The notes under the pieces are model-generated. The model did not search any database and was not told the DNA's origin. It saw only the letters and a program-made list of their open reading frames with translations. Shown piece by piece: positions 10,539 through 16,592 of a stretch of DNA of 64,000 nt (position 1 is the stretch's first letter; each line of letters opens with the position of its first letter). This DNA is from Entomortierella parvispora E1425 (Eukaryota > Fungi > Mortierellomycota). Where the stretch lies: positions 2,108,001 through 2,172,000 of the forward strand of contig BQFW01000007.1 of NCBI GenBank assembly GCA_020891255.1, given 5' to 3'. Made by a program: the position numbers and the translations under genes.

Positions 10539-11159
10539 TTCAAGGAGACCAACCTCCTTTACAACAATGGCGGTCTTCCTTGCCTTTTCCTAGGCTCCAC
10601 TGAAGAGATCTTACGATTTTGAGAAAAAAAAAAAAAAAAAAACGACCCCCCCGCTACACGCACCTAAATCTCATGTTATGACGATTTGTATGAAAACATG
10701 AAAATAAATGTTCTCTCCACTTTGGAAGCACGAACACTTGATTCTAGGCAATGGTGATCTGGCTGAATTGGCAAGGAGTGGAGATTAAGCGCCGTCAGCG
10801 GTGATCAAGATCAATTGCCCAGCGACTATATTCGTGAAAGCCAGTGGGCTCAGATCAGATTCGGACGAAAGCATGCTAGAATGAACCCATGATCAGATCT
10901 CTCTCATGTCCACCCGCATTCATTTACTCCAAATGTCGACATGAGTAAATGAATGTATCAGTCCCCGCCCACCCCCTTGTTATATTCTATGACCCGCTCT
11001 TTAATCAGTGAGGGACAAGACAGGCCAAGTGGCCGGTGCTGCTCCGTCTCAACTCTCAGTCTCATTTCCGCTGATCAAAAACAAAGGTTCGGTATCTGAA
11101 TCACCTTCACGCTCAGATTGGATTCAGTTTCGATGCTCGAGCCATGGTCAGTGCTCTCT

Positions 11160-12520
11160 ACTCCAGACATTCCATTTCAGCTCATTTATCACAGAGACAG
11201 AAGAAGATGATATCAAAGGAGAGGAGTCCTATTCCTCTTTTCAAATAGTTTCTTTCTTTATTTTTATTTTATTTTTTATTTGTATGATTAAAGAGACTAG
11301 AAGAAGAGTCGCGAAAAGGCGGCCAAAGATCTAGATGAGAAAGGAAAGAAAGAAGGGAAACCCGGTGAATATCTGCTTGTCGTCGCAAAAGAGAAAACTT
11401 TGAAAAAGAAGTGAACTTGCCTGTTGGCCCAGGATCAAAAAGGGAGGACAAAACGACCGAGGAAGGGTCGCTCTTGTCGACCATACCCCACTATCTCTCT
11501 TGAGCACCAAGCCTTGAAGGTTCACAGGTAGTGGTCATGTGGGCCCCCGCATCAAGCATTTGAAGGCTGACAAGTTTTTCTTGTCGCCATCGCCAGCTTG
11601 GAAGGCGCTACAATCTCATTCAGTACCTGGCCTTGCACCTGCAGAAGCAGGCAGTTTACAGGTAGTGTCTTGTGGCCCAAGGATTCGATGGTTTACAAGT
11701 CTTTCTTGTATCCATCATGATCCCCGGAAAACACACAATCTCATTCAGTACCTGGGCTTGAGTCAGAGGAGGCGAGAGGTCTTGCAGCCAAAGTCAAGCC
11801 AGGGAGGGCGGATGACTACAAGGCCGAGTCTTGAGTTAGGGGAGGCGGTCTGTCTTGTAGCCAAAGTAGAGTATGGAAGGGGCCGAGGCTTGAATCAGAG
11901 GAGGCAGGCGACCGTGTGGCCAAAGTCAAGCCAGGGAGGGCGGGCGACGCCAAGGCCAAGACTTGGGCCAGAGAAGGCAGGCAGTTTTGAGGCCAAAGTA
12001 GGGCCAGAGGGGACCGTCGGTCGTGTGGCACCGGTCGAGCCGGGGAATAAGGCAGACAACTTTGAGGGCGAGTCTTGGGTCAGAAGAAGAAGGCGTTCTT
12101 GCTGCCAAAGTCAAGCAAGGAAGGGCAGACGACTTCAAGGCCGAGCCTTGTGCCAGAGGAGGCAGGTGGTCTTGCGGCCAAAGTCAAGCCGAGGAAGGCA
12201 GACAACTTCAAAGCCATGCTTGAGCCAGAAGAGGAAGGCGGTTTTGCGGCCAAAGTGGGACCTGGGAGGGTAAGACAGAGTCAAGAGCGTGAGTTGATGT
12301 CGTAAGATGAAGCCAGAAGGCGAAGGGTTTCATGAGGACTCTATTGTTGTTGGCCAGAAGGCAGAATGGTGGACTGTGTGCTCTTTGTGTGCTTTGTGTG
12401 TGTGGAAAGGGAGTGGAGTAGAGTGAAGAGAAGAAGGATGACGAAAAAAAAAGGGGGACCAAGCTGTATATGAATGAAAGAAGAGTTGACTGCTTTCACT
12501 GTCAGCTTGTCGACTGCGGC
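11160..12520 (-). repeat. Left arm of large inverted repeat
   Basis: Reverse complement of 12735-14095. Paired ORF-track entries have identical translations and coordinates summing to 25,255 (e.g. 11539-12273 + vs 12982-13716 -). Similarity decays outside ~11274-12440. Confidence 0.95.
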
Positions 12521-12584
12521 CAGATGTGATAGAGAGGACAACAACATCGGACATGAGGGAAGGAAGCCACACGGCACCGCGAGG

Positions 12585-12670
12585 ACGCGTTGTTTTGTCA
12601 TGAAGGATGAAAATTGGCCAATATTTTTGTCCAATTTCCCAAATTTCCCAAATTTGAGACAAAAACGCGT
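12585..12670. promoter_or_regulatory. Symmetric pair of ACGCGT (MCB-like) sites in the inverted-repeat spacer
   Basis: ACGCGT at 12585-12590 and 12665-12670, exactly symmetric about the repeat axis. CCAAT motifs lie between them. Confidence 0.45.
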
Positions 12671-12734
12671 CCGTCCACCACGCACCATCCCGCCTTGCGT
12701 TCTTTCATCCTTGGCAGTCCACCACACTCTGTAA

Positions 12735-14095
12735 TCGCATCCACGCCGCAGTCGACAAGTGACAGTCAACTCTTTTCCCATACAAATACAGCTTGGTCCA
12801 CTTTTTTTTTTCGCCATCCTTCTTCTCTTCACTCTACTCCACTCCCTTTCCACACACACAAAGCACACAAAGAGCACACAGTCCACCATTCTGCCTTCTG
12901 GCCAACAACAATAGAGTCCTCATGAAACCCTTCGCCTTCTGGCTTCATCTTACGACATCAACTCACGCTCTTGACTCTGTCTTACCCTCCCAGGTCCCAC
13001 TTTGGCCGCAAAACCGCCTTCCTCTTCTGGCTCAAGCATGGCTTTGAAGTTGTCTGCCTTCCTCGGCTTGACTTTGGCCGCAAGACCACCTGCCTCCTCT
13101 GGCACAAGGCTCGGCCTTGAAGTCGTCTGCCCTTCCTTGCTTGACTTTGGCAGCAAGAACGCCTTCTTCTTCTGACCCAAGACTCGCCCTCAAAGTTGTC
13201 TGCCTTATTCCCCGGCTCGACCGGTGCCACACGACCGACGGTCCCCTCTGGCCCTACTTTGGCCTCAAAACTGCCTGCCTTCTCTGGCCCAAGTCTTGGC
13301 CTTGGCGTCGCCCGCCCTCCCTGGCTTGACTTTGGCCACACGGTCGCCTGCCTCCTCTGATTCAAGCCTCGGCCCCTTCCATACTCTACTTTGGCTACAA
13401 GACAGACCGCCTCCCCTAACTCAAGACTCGGCCTTGTAGTCATCCGCCCTCCCTGGCTTGACTTTGGCTGCAAGACCTCTCGCCTCCTCTGACTCAAGCC
13501 CAGGTACTGAATGAGATTGTGTGTTTTCCGGGGATCATGATGGATACAAGAAAGACTTGTAAACCATCGAATCCTTGGGCCACAAGACACTACCTGTAAA
13601 CTGCCTGCTTCTGCAGGTGCAAGGCCAGGTACTGAATGAGATTGTAGCGCCTTCCAAGCTGGCGATGGCGACAAGAAAAACTTGTCAGCCTTCAAATGCT
13701 TGATGCGGGGGCCCACATGACCACTACCTGTGAACCTTCAAGGCTTGGTGCTCAAGAGAGATAGTGGGGTATGGTCGACAAGAGCGACCCTTCCTCGGTC
13801 GTTTTGTCCTCCCTTTTTGATCCTGGGCCAACAGGCAAGTTCACTTCTTTTTCAAAGTTTTCTCTTTTGCGACGACAAGCAGATATTCACCGGGTTTCCC
13901 TTCTTTCTTTCCTTTCTCATCTAGATCTTTGGCCGCCTTTTCGCGACTCTTCTTCTAGTCTCTTTAATCATACAAATAAAAAAAAAAATAAAAATAAAGA
14001 AAGAAACTATTTAAAAAGAGGAATAGGACTCCTCTCTTTTGATATCATCTTCTTCTGTCTCTGGTATGAATGAACTGAAATGCAATGTCTGAAGT
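12735..14095 (+). repeat. Right arm of large inverted repeat
   Basis: Mirror of 11160-12520. Apparently identical over ~12815-13981, with substitutions and indels nearer the centre and the outer end. Confidence 0.95.
12999..13500 (+). repeat. Degenerate ~73-nt tandem array anchored on ACTTTGGC (mirror copy ~11755-12256)
   Basis: Anchors at 12999, 13071, 13144, 13220 (degenerate), 13256, 13329, 13388 and 13461, giving spacings of 72, 73, 76, 36, 73, 59 and 73. Confidence 0.85.
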
Positions 14096-16592
14096 AAACT
14101 ACAATGAGATTGGGGCTGATCTTCGACTTGGATCAACAAAACAGACGAAGCTGTGAGATGCGCCATTCAGTGGATATGCCTCTCTGCTGTTTGCGCTCCT
14201 TCTCATGTCAACAAATGCAGCCATGAGGGCATGAATGAAGTATCACAACACGATGGAGAGTGGAAGAAGAGAGCTCACAAAGACAGACAGCTTCGCCCAA
14301 ATCAGATCTGAGCCCGCGGCGGGGGGGGGGTTTTTTTTTGGTTTGTCCCTGGATTGAATATCTCAACATGCTTCGCTGCGAAAAGAATGATGATGGCCTG
14401 TAGCAAGGTAAACGTGTTCTTGGACACCCATCGGAACGAGTCTTTTCTGTGTTGAGATTGTCCTCCAGCCTTCATTGCAGTATCCTCAGAATTCAGCGCA
14501 TGCACATAGTTAATGGGTCTTTTATTCCGAACAGAAGTGGAACAAGGGAGATAAATAGAGAGGAGAGCTCAATGTGTGATCAAATACATCACTCGCCTCC
14601 TATACCTCCGTTTCTTCTCCACCTTGCCAGTATCCCGTGGGGTCGTTCCCGTCGATAAGTAACGCCGTTGTAGCAGCTTTCGTTGAATGTCATCGAAACA
14701 ATCCGTGTCCGTGGTCTTTGCGTCAATGGCCACGAATCGTATGTTCAATCCCCATTTCAAATAGACATCCAACTTGCCATTGTCCACTTCCGTTACTATC
14801 CACCAACATAGAGAAGAATCAAAGCTGCCACATACAAGTTCCAGGCACCACATGGTCCCAAGCAGGACAAATCAAGGGTCTTGTTGAGTCGACAGCCACA
14901 CAAGTTCATGTTGGGGTCGAATCAATGGATCGTCTCTTTTACACTCGGGAGGTCGAGACCATTGCACCTGAATCGATCCAGTTATATCTCCAAATCTAGC
15001 GCCAACCTCCATTAGTGTATACCTTCAAATGGTTGGTCTTCCTGTGATTCCAAGTCCCAAGAATAGACGTGGGTCCCAAGTTTCGACTGCCGCTCCGCCG
15101 TCTCCTGTTACGAGCCATCGGCCATTGGGTGAGTATGGTCACAGCGTTACTCTCTGTACTCGACACCGGGTCCAGGAGCTTAAAGTCGTCGATCGCCGAA
15201 ATAGTGATTTAGTTCTCGTCGGCGAGCACGCTGTTTTGTCGAACTTGGACTATAGCTAGGAGTATTGTGTCTCTGCATCACATCCTACTCTTAGACAAAC
15301 TCGTCAAACTTGCCAGCAAAGATCGATTTGCCATCCGACAAATGCGTATCAGTCGTGAGAGACCCTGTGCATTCTTGCTCCTGAGGCTCGCCTTTGCACC
15401 GTGATTGCTCAAAAATGCACTACTTTGTAATTTGTTGAAGCGATCCAGGGGATGATCTCCAAAGTCTGACAGCCCATTCTAGACTTCCCGGTGCTAATAG
15501 TCGCCCGTGCGGGAACCATGCGACAGTCTGGTAGATCATGGCAACAGCTAAGACGAGAGGAGTCGAGTTTTTCGTTCGACTGTTGTGCAGCGTCCGCCCA
15601 ATCGCATCCAGATGATCCTGAGCACTTGTAATCATGATGTCCAACTGAAGCAATTCCGTCTGCACTTGCTGGACCAAGTCAACGAGCCACTACAAAAGTC
15701 CTGCATCCAAGATCCTGATCTGTCAACCTATCTCGTGAAGCATCGGAGGAGTGCCTGAAAATACAGGTATTAATATGTAGTATACACGGCCGTCGGTGTC
15801 ATTATTATCAATGACGACTCAACCTTCTGATAGTACCCAAGAGGAGCAGTAGGAGCGAGGAGGAATGCTCGGAGCGAATGGTAGATATGAAGAGACGCGA
15901 GGATTTGATAAAATGACATGAGCCAACAATGAAGATGCGTTAACCAGCTGTCATGGCTCGAGCTGCGGTGAAAGCAGGGTTGGTGGCAACAAGCAGGTGG
16001 CTTTTCTCACCACGTGGCATGCGTGGCATGTGTGGCATTCAGCATCGCCATCTCGTTGTTCGCGAAATGAAAAAAAGAGATCTCTCACGACGAGAGAATA
16101 TCTACCGTCATCGTACGTGCTGCAATGAAGCAAATACGATTAAACGTAGAAAAGTCTTCTTCTAATCGTGATTGCTGCATCTCCTCAATTGAAGCAAATA
16201 CGATTTTAGGTAGAATAGTCTTCCTAAAATCGCAACCGTGTTTTCCCAAAAAATCATTTCGCATCGTTGTCATGGAGAACAGACGCTACATTCCGAAGAG
16301 CACTTTTCTTTTTTCTTTTTTTTTTTTTTTTTTGGTTTCCAATAGGATGCAGCGCGTCATTATCTGTTGATCTATTACAAGAACACCCTAGGCATCTCTG
16401 AAGCGTCTTGACCCTTCTCCGCAAGAACGATTTGTACGAGGAGCTGAGCAAGTGTTTCTTCATACGAGCCGAGACCAAATCTTTGGGCATACGATCACCA
16501 AAGAAGCGAAGACGGAATCAAAAACATCAGATCTGGGACTTGAACAATCTCAACATACGCTGATCTTTTATATTCTGAAGATGTCGGCTCTT

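Follow-up and report, generated by a model that had tools for sequence, protein, structure and literature searches.

A palindrome of two head-to-head non-coding units in Entomortierella parvispora belongs to a dispersed family homogenised by gene conversion

We analysed a stretch of 64,000 nucleotides (nt) from the fungus Entomortierella parvispora E1425 (Mortierellomycota; assembly GCA_020891255.1, contig BQFW01000007.1), hereafter the window, which corresponds to positions 2,108,001-2,172,000 of contig 7 in the 38.9-Mb, 20-contig assembly. Plain coordinates below are those of the window; those written C1, C3 and so on are contig coordinates. The window contains a palindrome, which we call W, and our analysis confirms that it is real and that it consists of two head-to-head copies of a non-coding unit with promoter-like signals. 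The family to which W belongs counts at least 13 palindromic loci. The arms of these loci have been repeatedly homogenised by intrachromosomal gene conversion, a case of concerted evolution, and whole pairs have spread by segmental duplication and not by transposition. We consider it probable, if well short of certain, that W consists of two identical, divergently oriented non-coding transcription units whose likeness is maintained by gene conversion.

A repeat search of the window returned a single dominant inverted repeat, 11148-12492 against 12763-14107, with 98% complementarity and an interval of 270 nt separating the arms. When the halves were compared by BLAST, the arms came out at 1334 nt (11159-12492 against 14096-12763) with 17 mismatches and no gaps. 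The structure has the following main parts.

Positions 11159-12492, minus strand: left arm, the first of two copies of the non-coding unit, each of which reads from the centre outward; located by BLAST and by base-by-base comparison with the right arm.
Positions 12763-14096, plus strand: right arm, the other copy; shares ~90% identity with the right unit of a paralogous locus, L016.
Positions 11272-12440, no strand assigned: identical core of the left arm, 1169 nt with no mismatches; mirrored at 12815-13983.
Positions 12493-12762, no strand assigned: asymmetric spacer of 270 nt, a putative bidirectional promoter or regulatory region.
Positions 10846-10869, with a partner at 14292-14315, no strand assigned: outer remnant of an older, longer palindrome; 21 of 24 bases match.

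An earlier note on this stretch had described arms identical for about 1.15 kb, with a constant coordinate sum of 25,255. Both BLAST and the base-by-base comparison agree, placing the core at 1169 nt with a sum of 25255. The decay of homology towards the spacer and outward, described at the same time, is equally evident: all 17 mismatches are confined to the edges of the arms, nine in 11163-11271 and eight in 12441-12480, and identity is at background (~25-40%) beyond 11150 and within 12493-12762. Edge divergence amounts to ~8% and ~15%. Were the 17 mismatches evenly spread over 1334 nt, a clean run of 1169 nt would be expected with P ~3e-7. The remnant match, given previously as 10846-10872 against 14291-14316, was recovered as 10846-10869 against 14315-14292 with a local score of 33, compared with 19 ± 2 (maximum 26) in 200 shuffles (z ~7). 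A weaker, low-complexity pair at 10623-10654 and 14316-14347 (26 nt, 85% complementary), in which an A-run followed by a C-run is mirrored by a G-run followed by a T-run, may extend the remnant.

The edges also bear on whether the palindrome is an artefact of assembly or polishing, that is, a fold-back chimera. Fold-back joins can arise in long-read assembly, and long reads underlie what seems to be the published description of this genome (PMC8759367). Nevertheless, the arms have diverged at both their inner and their outer edges, the asymmetric spacer is unique and an outer remnant persists; moreover, twelve further loci have an equivalent layout with graded arm identity and the paralogue L016 keeps both heads. 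An artefact is thus scarcely credible, as the earlier note had argued from the diverged flanks. Short-read polishing of a long-read assembly might have homogenised the arms and so slightly overstated the identity of the core. Polishing cannot produce the edge gradient, however.

The earlier note had not recognised that the locus belongs to a dispersed family. A genome search with one W arm returned 54 matches, many of them as inverted pairs ~1-1.4 kb apart, and so yielded the other copies that the note had proposed to look for. In addition to the palindromes, the family includes one mixed pair, several single units (L018, L022, L023, L027 and L028), fragments (L017 and L030) and degenerate pairs (L016 and L024). 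Self-comparison of the fetched loci placed the 12 palindromes other than W on contigs 1, 5, 6 and 10; their arms measure ~0.9-2.4 kb and are ~84-99.7% identical within a locus, and their spacers span 159-681 nt. All-against-all comparison divided the family into three subfamilies, which, apart from a common architecture, are alignable to one another in short stretches only.

Subfamily A: contig 1 at 0.15-0.8 Mb, plus contigs 6 and 10.
Subfamily B: L014 and L015.
W-type subfamily: W, L016 (C7:2.538 Mb) and L017 (C7:2.783 Mb).

Contig 1 carries more than ten loci and contigs 7 and 10 carry three each, whereas most contigs have none. This distribution contradicts the suggestion of a centromere-like element, for which about one locus per chromosome would be expected, and we rejected that candidate. 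Subfamily A contains a core of ~290 nt that is 98-99% invariant in 26 units, with flanks ~85% alike. An example is L011:3497-3790 (C6:289996-290289), which comprises two tandem units of ~95 nt. Comparison of this core with W by nhmmer gave no homology save a weak match, which led to a unit resembling subfamily B in L016. L016:2000-4840 (C7:2537000-2539840) is a mixed head-to-head pair, the right unit being W-type (90%) and the left unit carrying modules like those of subfamily B.

Multi-copy palindromes with tandem subrepeats within their arms and variable middles are characteristic of foldback transposons such as Drosophila FB and Galileo, and the family consists of multi-copy palindromes with variable spacers, in which tandem repeats of ~73 or 32 nt fill no more than an inner part of each arm. 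The earlier note had accordingly listed a foldback-type transposon, and the same reading extends to any other element with long terminal inverted repeats. The outer arm ends, however, are idiosyncratic, differing in sequence at every locus, and 10 palindromes show no target-site duplications. Homology between loci stops at differing points, at times past the arm end, and those copies that are most closely related belong to larger segmental duplications. It is the inner ends, not the termini, that are best conserved, and no transposase is found inside. With neither shared outer termini nor target-site duplications, a foldback transposon is extremely unlikely; even taken together, transposon and artefact account for only a very slight share of our expectation.

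Gene conversion between arms is most readily appreciated from a phylogeny, in which arms that do not convert one another are expected to cluster by side. In a maximum-likelihood tree of 26 units the arms are instead sisters by locus in six palindromes (L010, L011, L013, L021 and L029 with 98-100% bootstrap; L026 with 91%), and this holds even for L013 and L029, which are each other's closest loci. The arms of L019 and L025, in contrast, cluster by side (99-100% bootstrap), which indicates that whole palindromes were duplicated, here without later homogenisation. These two palindromes (C1:478500-483500 and C1:495000-502000) lie ~18 kb apart in opposite orientation and may themselves be the arms of a higher-order inverted duplication. 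Since two distinguishable spacer sides are common to loci of subfamily A, the palindrome and its spacer are ancestral there.

For W, the paralogue L016 serves as outgroup. It is collinear with W over window positions 12386-16126, which take in the left-arm leader, the spacer, the right arm and 2 kb beyond, and it has two divergent heads and a spacer; the head-to-head layout is therefore older than the split between W and L016. L016 has lost most of one W-type arm, and its remaining right unit is 90% identical to both arms of W. At 75 of the 1244 sites compared (6%) both W arms depart from L016 in the same way, whereas between themselves they disagree only at the 17 edge sites, at which the right arm has the ancestral state nine times and the left arm seven times. 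The outer edge of W, with its ~8% divergence, is about as diverged as L016 itself. This pattern of edges and core is what one would expect of an old palindrome in which a tract of ~1.2 kb was recently converted. Hence, the outgroup and the 26-unit tree bear out the earlier proposal of an old duplication with a core homogenised by arm-to-arm gene conversion. Across the family the longest identical arm run falls from 1317 nt (L015) to 56 nt (L020), with L019, L020 and L025 at 56-112 nt, so that the loci range from freshly converted to decaying.

Polymerase template switching is an alternative route to identical inverted arms, described for short, non-identical inverted repeats (PMC8604942). For the unbroken 1169-nt tract of W with its graded edges, recombinational gene conversion is the better fit. 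A review describes widely spaced inverted repeats as tolerated and near-perfect palindromes as fragile (PMC7999016), and the family spacers, at 159-681 nt, agree with this.

Going outward from the centre, every unit begins with a TATA-like box, which is followed in constant order by a leader rich in CT and CA, tandem repeats rich in GC, the two conserved modules and a tail rich in A and T. These parts and the principal motifs of the spacer are placed in W as follows.

Positions 12585-12590 and 12665-12670, no strand assigned: ACGCGT motifs, which bracket a palindromic double CCAAT box.
Positions 12613-12622, no strand assigned: palindromic double CCAAT box, ATTGGCCAAT, between the two ACGCGT sites.
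Positions 12779-12789, plus strand: TATA-like box, CATACAAATAC, at the inner edge of the right arm.
Positions 12812-12893, plus strand: CT/CA-rich leader; mirrored at 12362-12443.
Positions 12999-13500, plus strand: GC-rich tandem repeats with a period of ~73 nt; mirrored at 11755-12256.
Positions 13499-13732, plus strand: two tandem hairpin-like modules (13499-13597 and 13623-13732); mirrored at 11523-11756.
Positions 13963-14007, plus strand: A/T-rich tail with several AATAAA, a putative polyadenylation region; mirrored at 11248-11292.

The TATA-like box has the sequence CATACAAATAC in subfamily A as well as in W, and the canonical TATAAATA stands at the equivalent place in subfamily B; the mirror site in the left arm of W, 12466-12476, is altered by the edge mismatches. 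A CT-rich block begins ~20-30 nt past the box and is followed by the CA-rich leader with a variable number of 9-nt repeats. A composite pattern of this head has 22 matches in the genome, all at family loci, and none in a reversed control, and a search with a profile of the head found two divergent heads in each palindrome. The heads can also be aligned between subfamilies. The CT/CA-rich leader and the AATAAA of the outer arm region, both described previously, are present, the former beside the spacer and the latter as AATAAA-type runs in the tail. An ATG with favourable surroundings, the ACC-ATG-CTGCC site, is retained by subfamilies A and B and by L016 and has been lost from W by a 6-nt deletion in both arms.

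The tandem repeats, with a period of ~73 nt in W and in copies resembling subfamily B and of 32 nt in subfamily A, occupy only an inner part of each arm. The conserved modules measure 100-145 nt each across subfamilies and vary least of all parts in each of them, the ~290-nt core being the conserved stretch of subfamily A. Those of the W type are near-invariant among W, L016 and L017, making them the best-conserved part of the unit, and the repeats in these loci are 74-80% alike. Subfamilies A and B have a tail of equivalent A/T-rich composition, and AATAAA is present in the tails of W and of subfamily A.

The spacers of the family are asymmetric yet homologous from locus to locus. Those of W and subfamily A share GTCGACTGCGG (near the arm), GGATGAAAAT, AAATTTG and a pair of ACGCGT motifs, and the ends of the W spacer form a short inverted repeat (12498-12520 against 12745-12766). 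ACGCGT occurs in 11 of 13 family spacers, in 10 of these as two copies. The same hexamer is the MluI cell-cycle box in yeast, and by analogy with yeast an MBF-type factor might bind it here. At L027:4772-6001 and L028:4446-5500, loci that each hold a single subfamily-A unit, an F-box/LRR gene stands in the place of the second arm and is transcribed away from the shared upstream region, which hints that the spacer can serve a protein gene as well.

The units do not evolve like protein-coding DNA. The earlier note had seen no convincing protein in the palindrome, and the list of open reading frames (ORFs), Pfam, a protein search and the substitution pattern all lead to the same conclusion. Ten ORFs from the list of arm and spacer ORFs of at least 60 amino acids (aa) have no Pfam match, and a 244-aa ORF has no relatives among 5.8 billion proteins in a search covering proteins of 134-427 aa only. 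All three frames are open through the W repeats; neither repeat period, ~73 or 32 nt, is a multiple of 3, and in W the reading frame drifts through all frames. The 116 substitutions between W and L016 fall 44/37/35 on the three codon positions, without a third-position excess, and insertions and deletions (indels) between the two measure 1, 2, 5, 7, 8, 10, 14, 17, 40, 44 and 73 nt. A protein-coding gene pair, with no conserved ORF, no codon-like substitution and no relatives, was therefore rejected.

Three smaller coding candidates were also set aside. The conserved ATG opens ORFs of 14-33 codons that have nothing in common beyond the first three residues; the 33-aa ORF that follows it in subfamily A is variable in length and sequence, and its substitutions do not lie at third positions. 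Small tandem ORFs in the subfamily-A core, considered as peptide precursors, show a 1-nt indel polymorphism and have lost their ATG in 5 of 26 copies. A 226-aa ORF that runs in frame through both subfamily-B modules splits into three frames with stops in L014.

Known RNAs were sought in the same loci. A search of the W locus against Rfam 15 gave nothing at E <= 1, and one subfamily-A locus gave chance-level matches only, far below gathering scores; inspection by eye of both strands found no proper C/D boxes, H/ACA boxes or hammerhead topology. The W modules fold better than shuffled sequences (z ~-3), alike on both strands, and folding of their alignment gives a shared terminal stem with an apical hairpin, with only 2-3 compensatory pairs. 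The modules are conserved, and as far as the sequence tells they could act either as RNA or as DNA.

We propose that W is a head-to-head pair of two non-coding units, each ~1.3-1.7 kb. The spacer would be a bidirectional RNA polymerase II promoter, firing two identical polyadenylated non-coding transcripts outward, each ~1.1-1.25 kb from the TATA-like box to the AATAAA tail, and the two conserved modules would be the functional part of these transcripts. The mirror layout would provide two co-regulated copies together with a built-in repair template. Outward transcripts of identical arms are the same in sequence and not complementary, and hence such a layout would yield dosage and not double-stranded RNA. 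The earlier note had likened the arms to two divergent non-coding transcripts. Of this comparison the outward layout stands, as does the signal set, the TATA-like box and leader being conserved in three subfamilies, whereas the transcription itself is predicted.

Several points weigh against this proposal. Transcription, its direction and polyadenylation are all read from sequence signals. The divergence between W and L016 is nearly uniform, at 2-14 substitutions per 100 nt with the spacer included, and looks close to neutral for the W-type subfamily. The modules differ in sequence between subfamilies, and the core of subfamily A folds no more stably than expected (z -0.5 and +2.1), so that a function as RNA is at most tentative. 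Gene conversion between loci, and not selection, could account for the invariance of that core. Metagenome contigs, scanned twice for exact matches, gave no relatives. The W copy may itself be decaying, with its conserved ATG site lost and the TATA-like box of its left arm altered.

Much of this is shared by the explanation we grade as the serious rival, namely that the palindromes are functionless inverted segmental duplications: dead repeat-like DNA in which close inverted repeats convert each other and conserved blocks stem from recent copying or inter-locus conversion. The uniform divergence, the missing ATG site, the altered left box and the empty metagenome scans speak for it, as do the visible decay of L019, L020 and L025, the reduction of L016 by most of one W-type arm and the position of W in a repeat-rich gap between genes. 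It sits less well with an ordered architecture that survives in three otherwise barely alignable subfamilies with the TATA-like box exactly at the inner arm edge, with a subfamily-A core far more constant than its flanks, and with spacer motifs that are kept between subfamilies. We regard functionless duplication as a minority possibility, though one to be taken seriously.

We do not favour the further suggestion that W is a hairpin-RNA locus, a source of endogenous small interfering RNAs (siRNAs), in which read-through of both arms gives a double-stranded RNA of more than 1 kb that is cut by Dicer. Near-perfect 1.3-kb arms would fold back on each other, the genome encodes Piwi-domain, RNA-dependent RNA polymerase (RdRP) and Dicer-type genes, and the neighbouring gene STT4 is transcribed towards the palindrome. 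In the hairpin RNA (hpRNA) loci of Drosophila and in Arabidopsis IR71, both arms are transcribed from one outside promoter and usually match target genes. W resembles them in its long inverted repeat, its short spacer and a genome with Dicer, Argonaute and RdRP genes. Here, though, the promoter-like heads of all family members are directed away from the centre, so the expected transcripts are identical and not complementary, and a hairpin RNA could form only if transcription entered from outside, as from STT4. Moreover, the W arm matches only its own family: all 54 matches in the genome fall at 15 family-type sites and no target gene is evident, neighbouring genes at C1:609.5-615.5 kb not having been inspected. 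Single units and the mixed pair keep the architecture without a matching second arm, and what the family conserves is specific modules and not merely the complementarity of arms. A hairpin-RNA locus is thus decidedly improbable.

A bolder form of the divergent transcription-unit proposal is that the family represents an undescribed class of fungal non-coding RNA genes. Their bidirectional promoters would be TATA-driven and of cell-cycle type, with paired ACGCGT, the identical outward transcripts would carry the modules as functional or processed RNAs, and the palindrome would be selected since arm-to-arm conversion protects the copies from decay. In a variant of this idea, decaying members such as W would, through occasional read-through, become sources of hairpin siRNAs by which the other members are regulated. 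We consider this extended version speculative and rather unlikely.

W lies in a 6-kb, repeat-rich gap between STT4 and an LRR/F-box-like gene. The long ORF to the left of the palindrome encodes the phosphatidylinositol 4-kinase STT4; its best named relatives are all from Mortierellaceae, with up to 91% identity, and protein searches identified orthologous STT4 genes in other Mortierellaceae, among them one at 96% identity and one from Gryganskiella cystojenkinii at 91%; several Mortierellaceae also show two STT4-type copies. A second gene of this type in E. parvispora, C3:896342-897877, is 92% identical in the C-terminal 512 residues, and genome searches found no member of the palindrome family beside this paralogue on contig 3. 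The right-hand neighbour is weakly supported as F-box/LRR, with an LRR_4 match at E 4e-4 in a 413-aa ORF and no Pfam match in a 741-aa ORF. A search for a recurrent neighbouring gene found that F-box/LRR genes adjoin some family loci without a consistent pattern. The gap itself contains one further collinear feature.

Positions 14186-16126, plus strand: right flank collinear with L016, 76-80% identical to C7:2539357-2541565.

This collinearity indicates that the duplicated segment is larger than the palindrome, and duplicated non-coding DNA makes up the gap that separates STT4 from its neighbour. Positions 14600-16126 form a low-copy repeat found also at C7:2540096-2541565 (76%) and C13:987337-987953 (76%). 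An element of ~140 nt at 16380-16530 has more than 30 copies, on nearly all contigs, with ~75% identity to the window copy, and is probably a miniature inverted-repeat transposable element (MITE) or a repeat resembling short interspersed elements (SINEs).

Among known systems, Drosophila Hsp70Aa and Hsp70Ab are an inverted, divergent pair of protein genes with proven expression that is homogenised by gene conversion. W is similar in its head-to-head copies around a common upstream region, in homogenisation by conversion and in what would be two co-regulated copies; it differs in that the units are non-coding and their expression is predicted. Palindromes on the X and Y chromosomes of apes and on willow sex chromosomes likewise have arms kept alike by arm-to-arm gene conversion (PMC11168930, PMC7023750). 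They share with the present family inverted arms around a unique spacer, arm identity that exceeds the age of the structure, intrachromosomal conversion and several copies per genome. Their arms run to tens of kb to Mb, in contrast to ~1-2.4 kb here, and the family described here differs further in lying on ordinary fungal chromosomes, in containing no protein gene and in being one sequence family spread by segmental duplication.

What is unusual is that small non-coding palindromes sharing a conserved promoter-like head are scattered as a family through the genome of an early-diverging fungus. Palindromes kept by conversion are best known from sex chromosomes; here they form a dispersed, small, non-coding family on ordinary chromosomes. 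If the units are not transcribed, W would be ordinary duplicated junk with a textbook signature of conversion; if they are, they would represent a new kind of non-coding RNA gene in Mortierellaceae. The family is a compact natural series for measuring the lengths and rates of conversion tracts, in which the mixed pair at L016 shows arms when they are not copies of each other, and with it one can ask whether non-coding genes are protected by mirror duplication.

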